NCBI GenBank assembly: GCA_038087875.1 | Contig: CM075977.1 | Coordinates: forward strand, 46,004,001-46,068,000 | Direction: 5' to 3' | DNA length: 64,000 nucleotides | From: Malacoraja senta | Lineage: Eukaryota | Part shown: piece after piece, positions 30,582 to 58,654 of the stretch | Layout of the letters: the number at the start of each line of letters is the position of its first letter | How positions within the stretch are numbered: the stretch's first letter is position 1 | Program-made: the position numbers and the translations under genes | Notes under the pieces: model-generated | Database searches by the model: none | What the model was told of the DNA's origin: nothing | Seen by the model: the letters and a program-made list of their open reading frames with translations, nothing else

Positions 30582-32565
30582 TTGTTGTCGACTATGCAGA
30601 AAGCAAGCAAGGTGAAGGCGAGGCGAGCTATGTCAAAAAGTGTAGAGGATCGTGGGATTGCAGCTACCGAGGGCCTGCCCAGTTCACCAACTTTATCACA
30701 AGCAGAGCTTGCTAATGCAGACTTATTGCAAGGGAGCAGCGCTGCCGCGCCTGTAGGGCATAAGGCCACATGTAAGTCTGTTAGGCCTATAGACCCAGAG
30801 TCGGGCCAGGAGGTTTTACCTCAAGAAGAATCCATTTCCTCACGGCTCTCACAGTTAGAGCACCTAATGGAGAGGTGGCTCCAGAAAGATTATGCAGTCC
30901 AGAAAGGAGGAGGAGTGGAGTTCTCACCAGGCTATTGGAGTGCCTGTGCCAGCAGTGCCAGAAACAGGACTGCATAATTGCCCCTTCATGGAAGAAGAGG
31001 GTGTGCCAAGTCAGAGTTATACTGATACTGAGGAAATGGCTGAACATAGCCCAATGGGTGAAGGGCAAAAGGTTTTGGTACCAAATTTGGCTGCTAAATT
31101 TGAAGTCCCCAAAGAATCAGGGGAGCCATTGAGGGAAGAATTGGCTATGAGAATTAATTATATGCTCTCCCATCAGCTCCTGGAGCTGATTATGGATGAT
31201 ACGGCCAAGAAATATGAAACTCCAGTTAACTGTGGTTTGTTCAAAGTGCCAATGGTCAATCAGGTTATATGGGGCCAAATGGGGGTTGCAGTGAGAGCAC
31301 AAGAGTTGAAGCTCCAGAGGGTGCTTAAATTACTGGCTACAGGCATTACAGCGTTTGCCAGAATAGTGGAAGAGGGGCAATTGACTGAGGTTCATCAGGA
31401 CGCTCTGGGGCTTTTGTGCAGTGCACATTTTGAAATGAACAGCCTGAGAAAGAGTGCCATATGCCCCGCCATTCACCCACAATTTGCAGGACTCTGCAAA
31501 CCAAATAATGTGCAGTTACCAAATCTGTTGTTTGGGGAGGACCTCGCAAAGCGAGTTAAGGAAATGAATGAAGAGGCAAAAACTGTGGGCCTCATTAAAG
31601 TGCCAACAACCAGCAGGATGGGCAAAAGGTTTTTCTCTTATCGACGGGGTGCTGTCACAGGGACTGGTGAAGGGACCAGTCGTCCATTTGCGAACACAAG
31701 AACATGGTATCCTGCCACAGGCACAAAGCCTAAGATGAATTTCCCTACGAGGGGCCGGGGGCAACAAGCTCATTCAGGAAATGTGCAGGTAAGAGATTTT
31801 GCTCCTGAAGGAAATAAATTAAGTGGGAAAGATGTTCAAATAGGTGGCAGGTTACACCTGTTTCTTAAAGAATGGCAGGAGATAACATCAGATCCATTTG
31901 TTTATTGGAGTATAGAGGGGTTTCAAATTGAATTTTACCCAACTGTGTGTCAGCCCACTCAGCATGTCCCAACTCGGATACTTGTGTTTTCACAAGAAGA
32001 GAATCTACAGATACAGGCAGAGCTTGAGATATTGCGCAAAAAAGGGGTTATTGAGAAGTCTGTTCGTCAATCCCATCAGTTTGTGTCAAGTATTTTTCCT
32101 AGGTCTAAAAAGGATGGGGGATGTAGAATCATTCTGTACCTGACGAGCCTAAACCCTTTTGTGCAGTATAGACATTTCAAGATGGAAACGTTTTCTACTG
32201 CTAAACAGCTGGTTTCCAAAGGGTGTTTTATGGCAAGCATAGATCTCAAGGATGCTTATTATTCAGTGTCTGTTCACTGTGAGGATAGGAGATATTTGAA
32301 ATTTAGCTGGATGAGGCAATTGTGGCAATTCAAAGCAATGCCGAATGGGTTAACTTCAGCTCCCAGATTGTTGACCAAATTGTTGAAACTAATTCTTGGC
32401 TTACTCCGAACTCAGGGTCATGTGATAATGGCTTATTTGGATGATATTTTTATTGTAGGGAACTCTCGGGAGGCAGCTGAATTATCTGTTTCAAGTGTTA
32501 AACTCACTTTTGTTAGCAGTTGGGGTTTATTATCCACCCAGATAATCCAAATTAACACCAGTTAA
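30582..32565 (+). pseudogene. DIRS Gag-like (frameshift near 30900-30960) running in frame into reverse transcriptase
   Basis: Gag motifs KYETPVNC..VPMVN..IW and LLFGEDL. RT motifs IGGRL..F..EW, HFKMET, SIDLKDAY, MPNGLTSAPR, AYLDD. Confidence 0.9.
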
Positions 32566-32578
32566 AGTTATTGATTAC

Positions 32579-33718
32579 TTGGGCTTCACTATTCACTCAG
32601 ACCACATGTTAGTGACTTTGCCGAGTGATAAGAGGCAGCAGTTAATTGAAGAATGTGTTAAGCTAGTTGAAGAACAATTACCTTCAATTAGACAGGTGGC
32701 AAAGTTGATTGGCAAGCTGGTGGCTGCTTTTCCAGCAGTGCAGTTTGGGCCTCTGCATTATCAAGAATTACAAAGAGCAAAACAACAAGCATTGAGAGTG
32801 CATGCAGGCCATTTTGACAGGCCTATGAAGTTGCCAACAGAAGCTATTTCTGAGATACAATGGTGGATTATGAATGTTGCAACTAGCTCCAGGAATGTTT
32901 TGGTTGACCCACCTTCTATAATTTTGCAGACTGATATCAGTGGCCTAGGTTGGGGTGCTACTGATATGGCTTCTAGCTGTGGAGGCAGATGGAATTGTAA
33001 AGAGGCATCCCTTCTACAATTAAGAGGGATCAATTATTTAGAGCTTCTGGGAACATTTTATGGGCTTAAAGCTTATTGTTTTAACAAAAGTCAAGTGCAT
33101 GAGCAGGTTCAAATTGATAACACTACAGCAGTAGCTTATCTGAATCATATGGGTGGAGTCAAGTCAAAACCTTGTGATAGGTTGGCTAATCAGATCTGGA
33201 GTTGGTGTATTGACAGAAATATTTGGATTTCAGCAATCCATTTACCTGGTAGATTCAACATAGTCGCAGACACAAGGTCACGACAATTCAATGACAATAT
33301 AGAATGGATGTTGAATCATGACATATTTGAAAATGTTGTTGCTCGTTTTGGGACACCAGATATCGATTTGTTTGCATCTAGGCTTAACCATCAGTTGCCT
33401 AAATATGTTTCATGGGAACCAGATCCTGGGGCAGCAGCGGTTGATGCGTTCTCGCTGCACTGGGGTGGAATGTTTCTATATATTTTTCCTCCATTCTGTC
33501 TCGTCAGTCGATGCCTGCAAAAGATCAAGCAGGACTCCGCTTCAGGAGTATTGGTGGTACCCGACTGGCCTACTCAGCCATGGTATGCTCATGTTTTGAA
33601 GATGGCTACTGAGCCTCACATGATTGTTCCCAAACACAAAAACTTACTGGTGAATCCTGTAACTGGAGATCAGCATCCTTTACATGATCGTATTGATCTG
33701 TTAATTTGCAGATTCTAA
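32579..33718 (+). pseudogene. DIRS RT thumb, RNase H and DNA N6-adenine methyltransferase-like domain
   Basis: QTDISGLGWG, INYLEL, QIDNTTAVAYLNHMGG, HLPGRFNIVAD. Methyltransferase-like motifs DIDLFASRLN, VDAF, YIFPPF, VVPDWPTQPWY. Confidence 0.9.
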
Positions 33719-34689
33719 GGAGACCATACCTGGGGAGAGGACTATCCGAGCGCACCATGGATGTTATCACTGCGGCCTGGAGGGATAGTACCTAAAAGCA
33801 GTACATCTCTGTGATAAGGAAGTGGGAGGTGTTCTGTTTACAGCAGAATATTTCATATCAAAATGCATGCATCCCAGATGTGCTAGACTTTTTGTCAACT
33901 CTCTATTTCGATCAAAAGTTAAGTTATAGTGCTATCAACACAGCCAGAAGTGCTCTGTCATCATATTTACCCATGGTATCAGAATTACATGCAGTGGGGA
34001 CACATCCGTTAGTCTCTAGATTCATGAAGGGAGTTTTTAATACCAATCCTCCTAAGCCCAGGTATTCGGTTATCTGGAAAGTGAGTGAAGTTCTTATGCT
34101 GCTTCGCCAGTGGGCTCCTGTTACAGTCCTATCTCTAGCCAAACTCACCATGAAGGTGGTCATGCTTATGGCGTTGGTATCAGCCCAACGTGTGCAGACA
34201 TTACAGATGCTGCGTCTAGACAGCATGGAGGTATCAAAAGATGCCATCAGTTTGTATGTTTATGATCTGCTCAAGCAGAGTAGAATAGGGACGACAGGAT
34301 GTAAGATTATATTTTCGGCATACCCCAAGGATTCCCACCTGTGTGTAGTGTCATGTTTGTCCCATTACATTGAGGTTACCAGAAATTTAAGGGGAACAGA
34401 GTCAGCATTGTTCATTAGTCACAAAAAACCACACAATAAGGTGTCGGTGCAAACTGTCTCAAGGTGGCTAAAGCAGGTTCTGGTAAGCACTGGGATGGAC
34501 ACTGATAATTTTAAATCTAATTCCACCAGGGCGGCAGCAACTTCAGCTGCCAGGGCGATGGACGTTCCTATAGACCATATCCTCGCGGCCGCAGGATGGT
34601 CCAGTGAACTTATGTTCCAAAGGTTTTACCATAAGCCAATTACAAGGCTGGGGGGTTTTGCTGATTCTGTTTTAAGTTCAGTTATATAG
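33712..34689 (+). pseudogene. DIRS tyrosine recombinase (in-frame TAA at 33793; catalytic His replaced by Asn)
   Basis: GLSERT..AAWRDST*KQY, SYSAINTARSALS, SAQRVQT (R), KSNSTR (normally HSTR), AAGW, FQRFYHK (Y). Confidence 0.92.
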
Positions 34690-47780: not shown

Positions 47781-50700
47781 TCAATAACCCGTGCCTGCCT
47801 TCTCCCCATATCCCTTGACTCCACCAGTCCCTAGAGCTCTATCTAACTCTCTCTTAAATCCATCCAGTGATTTGGCTTCCACTGCCCTCTGTGGCAGGGA
47901 ATTCCATAAATTCATAACTCTCTGGGTGAAAATGTTTTTTCTCACCTCAGTCTTAAATGACCTCCCCTTTATTCTAAAACTGTGGCCCCTGGTTCTAGAC
48001 TCGCCCAACATTGGGAACATTTTTCCTGCATCTAGCTTGTCCAGTCCTTTTATAATTTTATATGTTTCCATAAGATGCCCCCTCATCCTTCTAAACTCCA
48101 GTGAATACAAGCCTAGTCTTTTCAATCTTTCCTCATATGACAGTCCCGCCATCCCAGGGATCAATCTCGTGAACCTACGATGTCCTTCCTCAAATTAGGA
48201 GACCAAAACTGTACACAATACTCCAGATGTGGTCTCACCAGAGCCCTATACAATTGCAGAAGAACCTCTTTACTCCTATACTGAAATCCTCTTGTTATGA
48301 AGGCCAACATTCCATTAGCTTTCTTCACTGCCTGCTGTACCTGCATGCCAGCTTTCAGTGACCGGTGTACAAGGACACCCAGGTGTCGCTGCACCTCCCC
48401 CTTACCTAACCTAACCCCATTGAGATAATAATCTGCCCCCTTGTTTTTGCCGCCAAAGTGGATAACCTCACATTTATCTATATTATACTGCATCTGCCAC
48501 GCATCTGCCCACTCACTTAACCGGTCCAGGTCACCCTGCAACCTCCTAACATCCTCTTCACAGTTCACACTGCCACCCAGCTTTGTGTCATCCGCAAACA
48601 TGCTAGTGTTGCTCCTAATTCCCTCTTCCAAATCATTAATATATATGGTAAACAGTTGTGGCCCCAACACCGAGCCTTGCGGCACTCCACTCGCCACTGC
48701 CTGCCATTCTGAAAAGCACCCGTTCACACCTACTCTTTGCTTCCGGTCAGCCAACCAATTTTCTATCCATGTCAACACCCTACCCCCAATACCATGTGCT
48801 CTAATTTTAGTCACCAGTCTCCCGTGCAGGACCTTATAAAAGGCTTTCTGAAAGTCTAGATACACTGCATTCACTGGCACCCCTTCATCCATTTCACTTG
48901 TCACATCCTGAAAAAATTCCAGAAGATTAGTCAAGCATGATTTCCCTTTCATAAATCCATGTTGACTTGGACTAATCCTTTTGCTACTAACCAAATGCCC
49001 CATTATTACCTCTTTAATAATTGACTCCAGCATCTTTCCCACCACCGAAGTTAGGCTAACTGGTCTATAATTCCCCGTTTTCTCTCTCGCTCCTTTCTTG
49101 AAAAGTGGGATAACATTAGCTATCCTCCAATCCACAGGAACTGATCCTGAATCTATTGAACATTGGAAAATGATCACCAATGCGTCCACTATTTCTAGAG
49201 CCACCTCCCTGAGGACCCCGGGATGCAGACCATCAGGCCCAGGGGATTTATCAGCCTTCAGTCCCATTAGCCTACCCAATACTATTTCTCGCCTAATGAA
49301 AATTTCTTTCAGTTCCTCTACCCCCTTAGATCCTCTGTCCTCCAGTACATCTGGGATATTGTTTGTGTCTTCCTTATTGAAGACAGATCCGAAGTACCGA
49401 TTCAACTCTTCTGCCATTTCCTTGTTGCCCATAATAATTTCACCCGTGTCTGCCTTCAAGGGACCCACATTTGACTTTGCTACTCTTTTTCCTTTAACAT
49501 ATCTAAAGAAGCTTTTACTGTCCTTTTTTTATATTCCTGGCCAGCTTCTCCTCGTACTTCATCTTTTCAGCCCGTATTGCCCGTTTTGTTTCCTTCTGTT
49601 GTCCTATGAAAGTTTCCCAATCCTCTGGCTTCCGGCTACTCTTTGCTGTGTTATACATCTTTTCTTTTAGTTTTATTCTATCCCTAACTTCTCTTGTCAG
49701 CCACGGTTGCCTCCTACTCCCCTTAGAATCTTTCTTCCTTTTTGGAATAAAATGATCCTGCGTCTCCCGGATTATGCCCAGAAATTCCTGCCATTGCTGT
49801 TCCAACGTCATTCCTGCTAGGATCCCTTTCCAGTCTACTTTGGCCAGCTCCCGTCTCATGCCTTCAAAGTCCCCTTTGTTCAACTGCATCACTTCCACTT
49901 CCGATTTAACGTTCTCCTTCTCAAATTGCAGATTAAAACTAATCATGTTATGATCACTACCTCCAAGCGGTTCCTTTACCTCAAGTTCTCTTATCATATC
50001 TGGTTCATTGGACAACACTAAATCCAGAATTGCCTTTTCTCTGGTCGGCTCCATTACAAGCTGCTCTAAGAATCCATCTCGGAGGCATTCTACAAACTCT
50101 CTTTCTTGGGGTCCTGAAGCAACCTGATTTTCCCAATCTACCTGCATATTGAAATCCCCCATCACCACAGTGGCATTACCTTTGTTACAAGCCAGTTTTA
50201 ACTCCTGCTGCAACTTACACCCTACATCCGGGCTACTATTTGGGGGTCTGTAAATAACACCAATTAGTGTCTTCTTGCCTTTACAATTCCTCAACTCAAT
50301 CCACAGTGACTCTACCTCGTCAGTCCCTATGTCTTCCCTCGCAAGGGACTGAATTCCATCCCTCACAAGAAGAGCGACACCCCCTCCTCTGCCCACCTGC
50401 CTGTCCTTTCTATAGGATGTATAACCCTGAATATTAAGTTCCCAGGCCCGATCCTCCTGCAGCCACGTCTCAGTAATCCCCACAATGTCAAATCTACCAA
50501 CCTCTAACTGAACCTCAAGCTCATCTACTTTACTTCTTATACTTCGCGCATTCATATACAATACTTTTAATTCCTTAAGCATTTCACCTTTCACATCGAT
50601 CCCTATTACACTTGGCCATACTCTCCTATCTCTTTGTGAGCTTCCTTTCCCATTAATTCTGGGGTCATTAACCATCCCTTTACTCTCTTTCCCTTTAACT

Positions 50701-50801
50701 CCATCCTCGACTATCCCATTTGACACCCCTCCCCCCTTATTCAATTTAAAACCATCCGTGTAGCAGTGGCAAATCTGCCTGCCAGAATGCTGGTCCCCCA
50801 C
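47781..50801 (-). pseudogene. CR1 ORF2 (endonuclease plus RT), frameshift near 49515 and small deletion near 48180
   Basis: YMNARSI, GITETW, MGDFN, GSDH, NYRPVSLTS, QHGF, YLDFQKAF, GVPQGSVLGP, FADDTK. Confidence 0.93.
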
Positions 50802-51666
50802 CTGTTAAGATGCAATCCGTCCCTTTTGTACAGTTCCCCCTTACTCCAAAACAGATCCCAGTGATCTAAGAATCTAAATCCCTGCCCCCTGCACCAGTTC
50901 CTCAGCCACACATTCAGGTCCCGTATCTCCCTGTTCCTGCTCTCGCCAGCACGAGGAACTGGAAGCAAACCGGAGATAACAACCCTGGAGGTCCTGCTTG
51001 TCAGCATTTTTCCGAGCTCTCTAAAGTCACGCTGCAGAATATTCATCCCCTTCTTTCCGACATCGTTTGTGCCGACATGCACTACCACTTCTGACTGTTC
51101 ACCTTCGCCCTTAAGGATTTTCTGCACTCTGTCCGTGACATCCTGGATCCTGGCACCAGGAAGGCAGCACACCATCCTCGAATCCCGTCGTTACCGCAGA
51201 TACCCCTGTCCGTACCTCTCACAATGGAGTCCCCAACTACAATGGCATTGCCTGATGTTGGCCTCTTTGGTCTTGGCTCAACAGCCCTTTTTGCTTCGCA
51301 AGCCAGTCCGCCGCTCAGTGCCTTAACGTCTTCTGTCCACACAGTTTCTAAGTTGGTGAACCTGTTCACAAGAGGTACAACACCCGGGGACGTTTGCATT
51401 CCATGTTTCCCTCCCTTTCTCACCGTCACCCACCTTCTCTCTTCCAGTACCTTAGGTGTAACAATCTTACTGTAGGACTTGTCGAGGAACGACTCAGTTT
51501 CTCGGACGAACCTGAGGTCATCCACTTGCTTCTCCAGTTCCCCAACACGGTCCTTCAGGAGCTGTACCTGGATGCACTTCTCACATTTGTAGTAGCCGGA
51601 TGCACCAGCAGTGTCCTTGACCTCCCACATACTGCAAGCATCACACTGAATCAGCTTGCCTGACAT
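50741..51666 (-). pseudogene. CR1 ORF1: zinc finger/leucine zipper plus SGNH esterase, frameshift near 51190
   Basis: CDAC...CEKC followed by a heptad repeat. SGNH blocks IVVGDS, LPGA, HVGTND, DGLHL. Confidence 0.9.
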
Positions 51667-52900
51667 CTCCTTCTTTCATCTCTCCCTCTCCAGGGTTTTA
51701 CGTAGCCTCCTCTCCTCAGCCTCCTCGCCGAAGACTCTCGAGCCAAAGACTCGCACTTTTCTCACAGGGCACTTCCCTCGCAAGGCCGCTCCCTAAGAGC
51801 CGTCTTGCTTATATTGATTGATAAATTGCCTAATTTACCAATTTACAAAGCAAATTCCTCAGTTTTAAACTGTTTTCCCTTCTGACACTTCTTACTCTCC
51901 TCCCACTCGGGCTAGAGCCAATCAGTGTTTTCTCCTGCTTCTCTTTGTTGCTGTTGCTTCCAAATCCACGGGAGCTCTGAGTAAAGTCTGCCTGTGCTTT
52001 GCCTCTCCTTTTCAACTATTCTCCCCCTCTGACTCACTTCTAACTCTCCTCCCACTCGGGCTAGAGCCAATTCGGTGTCCAATTTTCCCGAAGCTAGACA
52101 AAGCTAGTCTTCAACATAGTCGAAGGAGGTTGCAGGAGGTCTTCTACATAGTCCAAGGAGGTCTTCAACATGACACTTTTTCAAACTCCGCTAAACTTTT
52201 CTAAACTCGCCAATTGGGTTGCCGCAGTGGAACTGCCCCTTAACATTAGCAAATTTGCAGATGACACAAAGCTGGGTGGCAGTGTGAACTGTGAGGAGGA
52301 TGCTGTGAGAATGCAGGGTGGCTTGGACAGGTTGGGTGAGTGGGCAGATGCATGGCAGATGCAGTTTAATATGGACTGTTTAATGTTAGACTGTGTTAGT
52401 GTGCACAGTGCAACTTTAATGGTCCTCCTGACCTAACAACTTCACATCACATCAATTTCAACATGGAATAGTGATGTGAATTTCCATCATGAAAATTGAA
52501 GTCAAACTAAATGGTGCATTTATATTACCATGATTGCTTTCAAACTAACCTATTTTACTGTCATACTATTATAACAAATTCTAGTTCCATGATGACTCAT
52601 AAACAAGATCAGAAATCACATTTTGAATTCTCAAACACAATGTGATTGTGAATAATTGCACAGCTGCCAAGATTCACCGAGCATTTCCGTATTTTGATGG
52701 ATGAAAATCAGTATTCAGTATTTCTCACATAAATGCAATAGAACTTACTATGCAGAAACTGGATTTTTGAAAATCAGTATTTTGCATGCAACCTCATGTA
52801 TTCTCAAATATCAGTATTGAATACTAAAAATCAGTAATACTGAATTCTGAAACCATTTTTGAAATGAGAATTTATAATTCTTGATTTTGATACAATCATA

Positions 52901-53216
52901 TCTCTATACTTATAAAACTCTGATCTTAGATGTGGATGAGTGTGTGTGTGTTTATTTGTTTGTTTGTTGACACATCTTTGCGAAAAGACGACGCGGTAAC
53001 AGTAAAAACAGTACATATTCCGGTAGAGTGAATACCGGAATAAGTAATAATATTAATATGAATAAAATTAACATAATATCAAGGGGGGTGATTAGTGTGT
53101 GTGTGGGTGGGTGGTTAGTGTATGTGTGACATTGCAGGCCACCCCCCTCCCCCCCCCCCCGTAGCTGCGTTTGAGGGGACAGTTGGTCTCCTCAACTATT
53201 AACCCACTTGGTCTCG
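52901..53216 (+). mobile_element. Short non-autonomous Helitron-like unit
   Basis: A|TCTCTATACTTATAAAA start, (GT)n near the 5' end, hairpin TTGAGGGGAC-agttg-GTCTCCTCAA (53171-53195), and end CCCACTTGGTCTCG|T resembling CCCACTTAGTCTAG|T at 12376. Confidence 0.65.
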
Positions 53217-53772
53217 TAACTATTAAAAGTCTGATCTTAGATGTGTGTTTGTTCATGTGTGGGTTTGTTCGTGTGTGTGTTTATTTGTAGAAAATCACAT
53301 ATTCTCGAAAAAATGACGCGCTGACAGTAAAATGTTTACATATTCCGGTAGAGATTTTTTCTCTGGAGTCCAAAATCGCCTTATCTGAAAATGTCATGAT
53401 ATATTTCTCGAGTTATTAATGAAAATCATCAAAAATCTGACAAACTGAAGTCTGCGCCCTCTTGCTCACGTCCCTTCTCCTTTGGTTGACACCTGCTCCC
53501 TGCTCCCTGCTGCACCCCCCTCCCTTCTCTCCCCCCTCCTCTTCCCCCTCCTCTCCCCACTCCTCCCCCCCATCCTGCCCCCCTCCTCTGCTCCCCCTTC
53601 TCTCCCCCATCCTCTCCCCTCCCCTCCACTCCCCCTTTTCTCTCCCATCCCCTCCACCCCCTCATCTCCCCCCATTCCTCTCCCCTCCCCTCTCCCCTCC
53701 CTTGGCCTCTCCTCTCTCCACCTTCCTCTCCCCCTCTCCACCCCCCCCTCCTCTCCCCCCCTACCCCCCCCC
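53217..53772 (+). mobile_element. Second, head-to-tail Helitron-like 5' region followed by a C/T-rich low-complexity tract
   Basis: 53221-53355 repeats 52910-53028 (TCTGATCTTAGATGTG..ACATATTCCGGTAGAG). Polypyrimidine tract at 53460-53772. Confidence 0.6.
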
Positions 53773-54248
53773 AGTCGCCACGCTAGCAGCATCCCAGGAT
53801 GCACAAGTAACCACACCAGCAGCACCTGAGAAGCAGCAGGAGGTCGCCCCAAGGAGCCACTCAAGCAGCAAGTTGGTGAACGCAGATTGCACCGTTCGCA
53901 TACCGACCTCAGCTGCCATTTCTCCCAAGCCTACTCGGGCTTGGACAGTTTCTTCGAACACTGCGGACTCGAGCCCCAGGTGATTGAGAATCTGGCCAGG
54001 GAGAAGTTTGCTGCCTTTGAAAGCCTTGCCCTCAAGTTTCGCAGCGTGAGCTGCCCAGACTCGGAGAGAGAGCCGTCCCGGCACAGCAGCAGCAATAGCG
54101 GCAATGAGCCACTTTAGGGGAAGAACAAGCCCCTGCCCTCTGCCCTCTCAGTCATCAAGCACAACCCAGGGTCATCCAGTGGCTGTACGGCTGCAAGGGG
54201 GCCAAGGAGCCCAAAAGCAAGGCTCCCTCTTTCCTGGTGTCGAATTAA
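53773..54248 (+). pseudogene. FAM110C: FAM110 family (FAM110C-like) C-terminal gene fragment with stop and frameshift
   Basis: RRLHRSHTDLSCHFSQAYSGLDSFFEHCGLEPQVIENLAREKF..LKFRSVS..SRHS, then TAG (54115-17), then LSVIKHN / -1 shift / RVIQWLYGCKGAKE. This matches the recalled FAM110 signatures LxRSxSDLS, FFxxCGLxP and SVIERNARIIKWLYxC. Confidence 0.85.
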
Positions 54249-54342
54249 AAAATATTGTGCCCCAATTTTCTTTTTCACTCTGGAAAAAAAGGGGGGTGAG
54301 ACTGCACCCATCGCACCCCCACCCACCCTTCAGACGACCATG

Positions 54343-56030
54343 CATAAGGTCATAAGGAATAGGAGTAGAATTAAGCCATTTTGGCCCACCAAGTCCACTC
54401 CGCAATTCAATCATGTCTGATCTATCCCCCCTAACCCCATTCTCCTGCCTTTTTCCCATAACCTCTGACACTCGCACTAATCAAGAATCTATCTCTGGCT
54501 TAAAAATATCCACTGATATGGCCTCTACAACCTTCTGTGGCAATGAATTCCACAGATTCACCACTGTCTGACGAAATAAATGTCACCTCATCTCCTTCCC
54601 AAAAGAACATCCTTTAATTCTGAGACTATGAGCTCTAGTTCTAGACTCTCCCACTGATGGAAACATCCTCTCCACATGCACTCTATCCAAGCCTTTCACT
54701 ATTCTGTATGTTTCAATGAGGTCCTCCCTCATTCTTTTAAACTCTATCGAGTACAGGCTCAGTGCCGACAAATGCTCATCATAGGTTAAGCTACCCATTC
54801 CTGTGATCAATCTTGTAAATCTCCTCAGGACCCTCTCCAGAGTCAGCACAATTGACAATAGACAATAGACAATAGGTGCAGGAGTAGGCCATTCGGCCCT
54901 TCGAGCCAGCACCACCATTCAATGTGATCATGGCTGATCATCCCCAATCAGTACCCCGTTCCTGCCTTCTCCCCATATCCCCTGACACCGCTATTTTTAA
55001 GAGCCCTATCTAGCTCTCTCTTGAAAGCATCCAGAGAACCTGCCTCCACCGCCCTCTGAGGCAGAGAATTCCACAGACTCACCACTCTCTATGAGAAAAA
55101 GTGTTTCCTCGTCTCCGTTCTAAATGGCTTACTCCTTATTCTTAAACTGTGGCCCCTGGTTCTGGACTCCCCCAACATCGGGAACATGTTCCTGCCTCTA
55201 GCATGTCCAAACCCTTAACAATCTTATATGTTTCAATGAGATACCCTCTCATCCTTCTAAACTCCAGAGTGTACAAGCCCAGCTGCTCCATTCTCTCAGC
55301 ATATGTCAGTCCCGCCATCCCGGGAATTAACCTTGTAAACCTACGCTGCACTCCCTCAATAGCAAGAATGTCCTTCCTCAAATTAGGGGACCAAAACTGC
55401 ACACAATACCAGGTGTGGTCTCACTAGGGCTCTGTACAACTGCAGAAGGACCTCTTTGCTCCTATATTCGATTCCTCTTGTTATAATGGCCAACATGCCA
55501 TTCGCTTTCTTCACTGCCTGCTGTACCTGCATGCTTACTTTCATAGACTGATGTACAAGGACCCCCAGATCCCATTGTACTTCCCCTTTTCCCAACTTGA
55601 CGTCATTTAGATAGTAATCTGCCTTCCTATTTTTGCTACCAAAGTGAATAACCTCACATTTATGCGCATTAAACTTCATCTGCCATGCATCTGCCCACTC
55701 CCCCAACCTGTCCAAGTCACCCTGCATTCTCAAAGCATCCTCCTCCCAGTTCACACTGCCACCCAGCTTTGTGTCATCTGCAAATTTGCTAATGTTACTT
55801 AGAATCCCTTCATCCAAATCATTGATGTATATTGTAAATAGCTGCAGTCCCAGCTCCGAGCCTTGCGGTATCCCATTAGTCATTGCCTGCCATTCTGAAA
55901 GGGACCCGTTAATCCCTACTCTTTGTTTCCTGTCTGTCAACCTTCCTTCCTCAGATATGGTGCCCAAAATTGCTCATAATATTCCAATAGTGACCTGACC
56001 AGTGCCTTATAGAGCCAAAACATTACATCA
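54343..56030 (-). mobile_element. Older CR1 3' fragment (54343-54850 and 55943-56030) interrupted by a younger CR1
   Basis: LERVLRRFTRLITGM..LSLYSIEFKRMREDL with a CATAAG tail. The sequence resumes at CCTTCCTCAGATATGG. Confidence 0.8.
54851..55942 (-). mobile_element. 5'-truncated CR1
   Basis: GIPQGSELG, KFADDTKLGG, LVRPHL, with a (CAATAGA)n tail. Confidence 0.92.
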
Positions 56031-56388
56031 TTACATTAGGTAACTTGGACTATTTAAAAAATCTGTTTTAGGTAACTTGTTGGCACATGAGGTGGTTTTC
56101 ATATTGCTGTTTCTGGGACATACACTAAATCATTTTCAAGATTGTCTGCTGCATAATTTCCATTATAATTGCACCTACAATTCAACAATTAGCTCTGGAG
56201 TGCCATGAAATTGTGAAGAGTGGATTTTTAAAAACCATTCTTTCTTTGGTAAACAAAGCAATTATCATTTTTCAGTCATAGTTTGTAAAAAAAATGTAGA
56301 CGCAGAAGCAATGAATAGGTCCTCTACATTATCAAACCAATAAATCTACACTTTGTAAAACAAACAAATCTTAAACAGGATTACTGTA

Positions 56389-57798
56389 ATCTCAATTCGC
56401 CATGGAGAGTAGCGAGAATACTTGTGCCGTAGGTGGGTCGCCAGGAGGTCCTAGTGTGTTGTCAGGAGGTCCTAGTGGGTTGCCACGAGGTGAACGATTC
56501 TCTTATGCCCCTGTCCCACTTAGGAAACCTGAACAGAAACCTCTGGTGACCTTGCGCCCCACCCATGAGGTTCCCGGAGGTTTTGGTCACTCTCTCTAAT
56601 GGTCGAAAGTGGTTTCCACATGGTCGAGGCTTCTTCTATGTTCCTTCGATTATTTCAACAAAATCAAAACCGGCCTCGACTAAAAATAAGTTGCCGTTTG
56701 GTCGAAGCCAGTGGAGTGGGGTCGCTATTTACTTACAGGCAGTCAAAGGCCATTTCCTTCGCTGACCGGCCATTTTGATTGGCTCATTGGAGTTTCACAA
56801 CCTAAAAGGACCCACTGGAAGGTAAAATGCCCGCTAACTTTATTAAACTTCTTAAAACTGTCTCCACTCCTACTCCCCCCTTCTCTCCCCTTCTCCCCAC
56901 TTCTCTCCCCCTTCTCCCCCCTTCTCCACCCTTCTCTCTCCCCTTCTCTCCCCTTCTCTTCCCCTCCTCTCTCTCCCCCTTCTCTGCCCTTCTCTCCCCC
57001 CCATCCGCGCTCTCTAAAGGACTTACCGTGCTCTGTGGCAGCCGTTTACCTTCCTCTTCATCAAGCAAACAGCGCTCCTCCGCTGTCCCTGGCCCCCACC
57101 TTCACGGTGTGTTTGTTTGTGTGTGTGTGTGTGTGCGGTCGGTAGCAAAGATCCTATAGGAGTTTTGGTTAGTAAATGCAGCACACGCTTCGGTCGAGAC
57201 TTTCCAGGCAAGAGACCAAAACCTCTGGCGACTCATGGAAACCTTGGGTGGGGCGGAAGGTCACCAGAGGTTTCGGTTCAGGTTTCCTAAGTGAGACAGG
57301 GGCATTAGTTTCTCGTAGGTTGAAGCCGGGTCTGACCGGTGAATTTCATTGGCTCATTGGGAAATAAAAACGTAAACACTCGTTTTCAGAACCAAGGATA
57401 ATCGACTGGTAATGTTACTGTTTGCCGAGCTTCACAGCCATGTATCTCTGGCTTCTTAAAAGTTGTCTCCACTCCTTCTCCCCTCTTCTCCCCCGTCTCT
57501 CCCGATTCTCCCCCCTCTCTTTTAAAGGACTTACCGTACACTGTGCATTTTGGCTTCTTAGCTACAGCGCCAACCTTCCTGTTCATCGCGGTGTGGGTTT
57601 GTATCACATTGGCTTTGCACTATATGAATTTCACTCAGACAGCGCTCCCACCACTTGACTTGCCTGCATAATGGGCTGGTGCAGGACGCGATGCGTTTGT
57701 GTGTTCCAGTCGCTGTTCCAGTTCCTGGTTTTTCAGGCGACTGCTACTTGACAGTCACCAGCAGTCGCCTGAAAAATTGCCTAAGTGGGACGGGCCCA
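56389..57798. mobile_element. Outer Harbinger-type MITE, left TIR missing
   Basis: Right TIR CCTAAGTGGGACGGGCCCA followed by TTA. Its interior is homologous to the inner MITE. Confidence 0.65.
56506..57304. mobile_element. Inner PIF/Harbinger-type MITE
   Basis: Long TIRs TGCCCCTGTCCCACTTAGGAAACCTGAAC / GTTCAGGTTTCCTAAGTGAGACAGGGGCA, with TSD TTA. Confidence 0.9.
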
Positions 57799-58654
57799 TT
57801 ACTGTATCAAAGAATTGATGAACTGTTAATAAAAATTAGATTTAGCACAGATAGTTTACTTATTATTAATGCTATCAAATTATTGTAATTTAACAAATGA
57901 CGAGAGATTTATTAGATTATGATTTTGTTGCTTAACTATTAGATTGATCCTCTACCATAGTCAATTTTGAATCGTTAATAGTATCGATCCTTTCCCATAA
58001 AATTTGAGAGAATTCTGTGAAAATTGTCTATGTCTGCATTCATAAAGGCAATGGTCTAACATGCAGGATTAAAATATATTATCCAACGGTTAAATAATTA
58101 TTGTAGATCCTATATATTGAATCCTTTTCATTTGCATCAGGTGTCTACACTGTTGAAGTGCACTGTCTGTATGTCTTAACTGAAGTAGCATACTGCATGT
58201 GAATGCTGCTGCAAATGGTTTGGTACAAAAATGTGGACAATCACCTGTTTCTTCACATGACATTCAGTCACCTTGGGAAGACCAGAAAACGTGCTTCCAC
58301 TCCCTTGCAACTGGTATGATCTTTTATCACCATTTATATGGAAACCATTACAACATCAATATTTATATATTTATAAACCTTTATGTTACAACTTTGCTTT
58401 CTAAAATGGTAAGTTGGTCGATTTTGAATGTAATGTATGTTTTACATCATTGATCACTGTATCCCTGCAGACCTGTGCAGAGAGTTATTCAGAAGCTGTC
58501 ATTGTAATAGGCTCCTTCACTTCCCAGTCAGTGGGGGGCAGATATTCTTTTTATGGTTTAATGCAGAATCATTATTTATCCTATCTTGAAATTTGGACAG
58601 GCTGTGATTTTTGCCCATATATTTTGTCAAGATTGTTTTATAACCTACACCTAC

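Follow-up and report, generated by a model that had tools for sequence, protein, structure and literature searches.

A fragment of the gene FAM110C lies in the window, which is the whole 64,000-nucleotide stretch of Malacoraja senta DNA that was analysed. The fragment is embedded in non-FAM110C modules that recur at other skate loci, and LINE sequence adjoins these modules on both sides. For comparison, L002, L047, L048 and L049 denote copies on four Leucoraja erinacea chromosomes. L003, in Amblyraja radiata, holds two copies that a 51-kb segmental duplication produced; L004 is a copy on a different chromosome of that species, and L001 is a transcript-like skate contig that contains FAM110C. 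The features of the region, in which the parts assigned to the element are putative, are as follows.

52241–52375, forward strand: LINE reverse-transcriptase fragment adjoining the 5'-truncated element; it matches LINE copies in the window and at other loci.
52380–52472, forward strand: internal piece of the 5' arm of the family, 89–90% identical to L002 9546–9638 and to L003 9149–9239 and 60401–60491.
52472–52918, forward strand: AT-rich internal module carried by some members only, 82–89% identical to L004 7195–7680, L048 5311–5873 and L047 5284–5442.
52919–53353, forward strand: variable internal module with two diverged unit copies (52919–53028 and 53230–53353) that start TCTGATCTTAGATGTG, and with GT-rich runs.
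53497–53773, forward strand: C/T-rich, minisatellite-like low-complexity tract adjoining the cargo; similar tracts stand in L002, L004 and the L003 units.
53774–54245, forward strand: decayed FAM110C-derived cargo, corresponding to L001 nt 948–1427 (codons ~245–402 plus 3 nt).
54246–54342, forward strand: 3' terminal region, consisting of an A/T-rich stretch, a hairpin at 54292–54320 and the terminal 15 nt at 54328–54342 (CTTCAGACGACCATG), the putative 3' inverted repeat.
54343–~54830 and 54858–~56027, reverse strand: two LINE fragments outside the element, multi-copy in the window, with a reverse-transcriptase domain.

Taken as a whole, 52380–54342 is in our judgement a 5'-truncated, decayed copy of a non-autonomous skate DNA transposon family that carries a piece of FAM110C (probability roughly 0.8). 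The L002 and L003 segments that match 52380–52472 stand upstream of the FAM110C cargo of those loci, and the window copy lacks the first ~465 nt of the 5' arm, including the 5' inverted repeat. At the other side, the 3' tail of the first LINE fragment (54343–~54830) adjoins the transposon end. The sequence-only reading had described a Helitron-like 5' region and a C-rich tract ahead of the cargo; the repeated module and the tract at 53497–53773 are real, but the module at 52919–53353 is internal and variable and does not form an end of the element. Its two unit copies are 73–81% alike, the GT-rich/C-run segment between them (53055–53159) matches L004 9247–9342, and the entire module is missing from L047 and L048 at the same point. 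Position 52907 (A|TCTCTATAC) was considered as a Helitron 5' end and rejected, because the homology of L004, L047 and L048 crosses it and diverges only from ~52919. An Rfam scan of window 50000–58000 gave no match, and Pfam searches of the other ORFs of the unit identified no second captured gene.

The window is packed with LINEs and also holds a DIRS-like retroelement (30892–34689), whose ORFs contain reverse transcriptase and tyrosine recombinase (Phage_integrase) domains. A long LINE ORF2 of 1114 codons with endonuclease and reverse transcriptase lies on the reverse strand at 4391–7735 and crosses an N run at 4402–4601. Two inverted LINE fragments (52241–52370 and 55668–55797), 96% complementary to each other, bracket the whole element. 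Since the L. erinacea copy of this segment is equally similar (95.6%), the pair is probably due to a LINE segment that is young or conserved, rather than to a local inversion. A further repeat family, which has a C/T-rich tract and a GT run of its own, occurs at 56848–57130 and 57452–57545, adjoined by inverted 74-nt repeats at 56502–56575 and 57237–57308.

The identity of the cargo as a FAM110C-like C-terminal fragment, proposed from the letters of the window, was confirmed. All FAM110 peptide motifs quoted in that proposal occur in the three forward frames of 53773–54342. The piece 53830–54114 matches the Pfam domain FAM110_C (PF14160) at E 5.5e-14 (53.6 bits, cut-off 27), and the final piece of the cargo matches the end of the domain weakly (E 0.06). 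In an exhaustive protein search, the intact skate FAM110C P0001 (402 aa) was 85% identical over 95 residues of the fragment. The top named relatives in protein searches were all FAM110C, which encodes a centrosome/microtubule-associated protein, and the first FAM110D relative appeared only at E 1e-34, versus 1e-242 for skate FAM110C. When the 95-aa piece was compared with protein fragments, a single match was returned, which was transcript-derived. At the DNA level, 53777–54245 is 86.7% identical to L001, and the cargo is 87.3% identical to the FAM110C gene of A. radiata (L005). A tblastn comparison of P0001 with the window aligned residues 245–402 only, in segments of 81–88% protein identity spread over three frames, so that the N-terminus is absent. 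Since the FAM110C homology ends at 54245, 3 nt beyond the stop codon, whereas the parental mRNA runs on for at least 750 nt, the cargo also lacks a 3' UTR and poly(A); the absence of the N-terminus and of poly(A) agrees with the sequence-only reading. The fragment is like the skate FAM110C gene in spanning the C-terminal FAM110_C domain at ~87% DNA identity, and differs from it in comprising codons ~245–402 only, in a frame that is broken three times, in the loss of the stop codon, and in the lack of promoter, N-terminal domain and UTR.

Compared with the parent, the cargo contains two frameshifts, caused by 1-nt deletions after 53826 and at 54164/5, a 9-nt in-frame deletion after ~54009 and a premature stop at 54115–54117, which agrees with the one stop and at least one frameshift noted earlier. 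The parental stop TAG has become TCG at 54240–54242. Differences from the parent are spread over the three codon positions as 15/14/24, and parental CpG sites hold 21 of the 41 transitions, a pattern that has the appearance of neutral decay. No promoter was identifiable in the window copy. Because its 5' tip is missing, its cargo is broken and it has no identifiable promoter, we infer that the window copy is inert, neutrally decaying DNA, probably without function.

Logan contigs of four sequencing runs (X1–X4) were placed on window 52200–57400 at 80% likeness, and their summed depth serves as an order-of-magnitude proxy and gives no true copy number. The sole single-copy stretch in this interval is 56028–56375, where each run had one contig, at depths of 21.5, 44, 24 and 54 for X1, X2, X3 and X4, respectively. 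Over 478 nt the X1 contig matches the window without a difference, so that X1 comes from the same species; the contigs of X2–X4 differ by 3.6–7.6% and come from relatives. Summed depth over the cargo was ~10.7–12.8k in X1, 3.2–3.8k in X2, 1.8–2.6k in X3 and 33–40k in X4, and over the last cargo part (54114–54287) it was 8.1k, 2.2k, 1.1k and 4.3k in the same order. The cargo is thus present at ~50–700 times the depth of the single-copy flank in all four skate species, which suggests roughly 10^2–10^3 copies per genome. In X1 the AT-rich module 52472–52918 reached ~800–1700 times single-copy depth, and the module 52919–53353 had the highest contig depth of the element. Over the LINE fragments (54343–56027) contig depth was in the millions, with single-copy DNA from ~56028 onward, and at the 5' side X1 contigs run on as LINE sequence past 52372.

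The contigs also carry information on how the copies are related. At 53977 and 54231 the parental base is present in 21–33 distinct contigs per run, and the base of the window is private to it. About half of the contig depth in each of the four species shares the 1-nt deletion at 54164/5, and most of it the 9-nt deletion. Furthermore, contigs bridge both cargo junctions (record 10 of X2 spans the junction of tract and cargo, and record 27 is also bridging), and the depth indicates that many copies, like the window copy, retain the cargo between nt 1230 and the stop codon. The parental bases in other contigs, the shared deletions and the bridged junctions support a family of independently decaying copies, the master of which may already have been frame-broken.

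Assembled genomes of two other species contain seven further partial FAM110C copies, in A. radiata and L. erinacea, that share non-FAM110C flanks with the window copy. Window 52380–52472 is common to L002 and L003, 52380–52967 to L004 and L048, 52763–52918 to L047, and 53055–53159 to L004. The last 97 nt of the window copy are common to L002, L003 and L047, its 3' terminal region being homologous to L002 12771–12860, L003 64776–64810 and L047 8030–8100. Outside the element, the flanks of copies on different chromosomes are unrelated. The shared flanks and the high copy number support carriage of the FAM110C fragment by a transposon, and the depth in four species together with the dispersed loci in two supports genome-wide amplification, both of which the sequence-only reading had put forward. 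The fragment is neither a single copy at the native locus nor flanked by sequence that differs from copy to copy.

In most copies the cargo starts at nt 159–161 of L001; several end at nt 1230–1236, and others are internally deleted. The cargo of the window is nearest to that of L004 (88.6%), and both have the 9-nt deletion. In trees built on a 240–270-nt overlap, the window groups weakly with the dispersed copies, with bootstrap values of 89/75 for nine sequences and 48/37 for eleven, and the flanks appear to be stronger evidence than the trees for its membership. Phylogeny on this short overlap was rejected for dating or counting captures, as the signal is too weak. The simplest reading of the cargo limits would be one capture of ~nt 161–1427 followed by differing deletions. 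Cargo beyond nt 1230 is retained in the window copy but absent from every assembled copy of the other species, so there may instead have been two separate captures by the same transposon family.

In A. radiata, the segmental duplication in L003 comprises ~3843–16200 and 54814–67331, segments ~51 kb apart and 92–97% identical, each with one copy of the element. The same locus contains a tandem array at ~78800–86700 with a period of ~2.2 kb and adjacent units 93% alike, consisting mostly of C/T-rich minisatellite that resembles the tract at 53497–53773 of the window. As a head-to-tail array that might show termini, this array (~78.8–86.7 kb) was uninformative.

Two origins without a transposon were weighed against these data. 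In the first, the fragment would be the native FAM110C gene in a decayed state, or a segmental duplicate that arose from it locally, and the 51-kb duplication in A. radiata, which doubled one copy (L003a/b), gives an example of such a process. It is nevertheless very unlikely. In A. radiata (L005, with the intact protein P0046) and Rhinoraja longicauda (L007), FAM110C itself stands at its own locus as an intact, single-exon gene, and of the fragment and its surroundings only the exon piece has a match at these loci. The copy number is high in four species, and the copies are dispersed over several chromosomes, their outer flanks unrelated. Two transcript-like Logan contigs, L001 (SRR11241622) and L006 (SRR13269370), encode intact 402-aa FAM110C proteins that share 94–97% identity with the gene of A. 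radiata. For L. erinacea, no intact FAM110C model came up in protein searches, and its true gene may be unannotated.

The second origin is a processed retrocopy of FAM110C mRNA, truncated at its 5' end, which LINE machinery would have produced and which would have landed among repeats by chance. The missing 5' part of the gene and the adjoining LINEs are what such an event would leave, and, as in a processed pseudogene, the gene copy has no introns, is truncated at the 5' side and stands in repeat-rich DNA. In contrast to a processed pseudogene, it lies inside a DNA element with termini of its own, the same junctions occur in other contigs, its flanks are those of many copies, and the homology ends just past the stop codon of a much longer mRNA, without 3' UTR or poly(A). 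We consider a retrocopy the least credible of the explanations, with almost no chance of being correct.

The type of transposon was judged from the ends of the family. Five independent 5' ends start CAGGCC (CAGGCCCGTACGAAG), and the base preceding them is T in four of the five. At the 3' side, the sequences of the window and L047 agree as far as ...CCATG; beyond it the window enters the LINE tail and L047 unrelated DNA, which places the 3' end of the family exactly at 54342. Two independent copies thus terminate in CCATG and a third (L002) in CCAT, and the 3' flanking base is T in one of the three. The 15-nt tips (5' CAGGCCCGTACGAAG, 3' ...CTTCGGACGGCCATG) match as inverted repeats at 10–12 of 15 positions when anchored at both extremes; a binomial estimate puts the chance of such an anchored match at ~1e-3 to 1e-4, and in unanchored local alignment against shuffles the tips were mostly not significant, so that the inverted repeats rest on the anchoring. 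Long terminal inverted repeats were sought in the L002 and L003 units, where only C-run/G-run pairs appeared, and fuzzy motif scans for further termini in the compared loci gave the known ones only. A metagenome scan for a conserved 18-mer returned 38 matches, all by chance and without homology.

The insertion site of L002 was particularly informative. The L002 element sits within a SINE, and three uninterrupted copies of this SINE have GCACAGAC once. In L002 the left flank reads TCGCAGAT and the right flank TTGGAGAT, a match of 6/8 with the same derived T in both, and comparison with the empty SINE site makes this a clear candidate for an 8-bp target-site duplication. The corresponding flanks of L047 match at 5/8, a weak candidate duplication, and those of L003 at 2–3/8, which is no duplication; the window copy has no 5' end. 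The motif CTAG followed by T in L002 was examined as a Helitron 3' end and rejected, since it belongs to the SINE that hosts the element.

The GC hairpin described in the sequence-only reading is real: its stem GGGGGTG...CACCCCC is kept in four copies, the window and three others. In the window it occupies 54292–54320, 22 nt from the 3' end and just inside the 3' repeat, and folds at -9.1 kcal/mol with a z-score of -1.4, which is ordinary for its base composition (-0.5 to -2.5 among the four copies). The end on this side had been suggested to be a Helitron 3' end or a MITE terminus; with CTRR absent, a Helitron end was not borne out, and a MITE terminus fits better.

A rolling-circle Helitron that captured the FAM110C piece, with the hairpin near 54300 as its 3' terminator, is accordingly improbable. 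It would account for the conserved GC hairpin ~22 nt from the 3' end, for the lack of long terminal inverted repeats, and for the TC with which four of the five 5' ends read when the preceding T is counted. Canonical Helitrons insert as TC...CTRR between A and T, have no inverted repeats and make no duplication. In the skate family, however, the terminus is CCATG and not CTRR, the only CTAG lies in the flanking SINE of L002, one copy in five has A ahead of TC, the inverted repeats at the tips are imperfect and 15 bp long, and L002 shows the putative 8-bp duplication. Helentrons (Helitron2) have short asymmetric inverted repeats and a hairpin downstream of the 3' repeat, and insert between two T. 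The comparison with them is mixed: the skate family has inverted repeats, and T at the 5' flank in four of five copies, but its hairpin precedes the 3' repeat, the 3' flank is T in one copy of three, and L002 shows the putative duplication. No Rep/helicase ORF was found in the loci compared. The inverted-repeat tips, the CCATG end and the duplication in L002 favor a cut-and-paste element over the Helitron of the sequence-only reading, and we regard the cut-and-paste assignment as likely. Short inverted repeats with 8-bp duplications are typical of hAT and a few other superfamilies. The assignment to hAT in particular has about even odds and amounts to a guess, since no autonomous partner or transposase was seen in the compared loci.

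From these results we propose that a part of the single-exon FAM110C was copied into the ancestor of a cut-and-paste family; this part most likely began 55 nt ahead of the start codon and reached 3 nt beyond the stop codon. Transposition would then have spread this cargo to ~10^2–10^3 sites, and sublineages would have kept different parts of it. In the window copy and many others, the last ~160 codons would have come to be joined directly to the last 97 nt of the element. Movement was most likely cut-and-paste, possibly by a hAT-like transposase supplied in trans, and not rolling-circle.

It is well documented that DNA transposons capture and amplify gene fragments, both in plants (Pack-MULEs, Helitrons) and in bats. 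Like Pack-type TIR transposons (Pack-MULEs, Pack-CACTA and hAT/Ds-like elements), the skate family appears to be non-autonomous, with inverted-repeat tips and a putative target-site duplication, and to hold a transduplicated host-gene piece between its ends that was amplified as cargo alongside variable internal modules. It differs from them in its host, a cartilaginous fish, whereas Pack-type elements are mostly described in plants; in repeats of only ~15 bp that are imperfect, with the superfamily putative; and in a cargo that was originally almost the whole coding sequence. It resembles Helitron gene capture in maize and in the Helibat elements of bats in the DNA-level copying of a gene fragment to hundreds of sites, in the hairpin near the 3' end and in its modular cargo, but the defining Helitron ends were looked for in the skate family and other ends were found. 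Literature searches returned no description of such capture for skates or for FAM110C. The capture of FAM110C is, on this comparison, a real event of an already known kind.

The finding bears on annotation: in the two skate genomes, six or more NCBI gene models derive from dead transposon-borne copies, and such models are named 'FAM110B-like', 'FAM110C-like' or 'uncharacterized LOC...' with Ig domains. They lie at the following positions.

L002 10001–10858, L. erinacea: gene model on a dead copy.
L047 7001–7558, L. erinacea: gene model on a dead copy.
L048 7001–7654, L. erinacea: gene model on a dead copy.
L049 7001–7531, L. erinacea: gene model on a dead copy.
L004 10001–12517, A. radiata: gene model on a dead copy.
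L003 10001–103510, A. radiata: gene model on a dead copy.

In one model (P0157), ~96 FAM110C-derived residues are fused to Ig domains 90 kb downstream. Since the ends, once checked, did not bear out the Helitron label for this family, other Helitron calls in this genome may deserve a check of ends, inverted repeats and duplications. As a speculation to which we attach little weight, the family would be a vertebrate Pack-type cut-and-paste family that takes up host coding sequence and seeds it through the genome, and some of its copies may enter host transcripts, for example that of the A. radiata model LOC116986580, in which the first ~96 residues derive from a FAM110C copy and are joined to Ig domains, or feed small RNAs directed against FAM110C.
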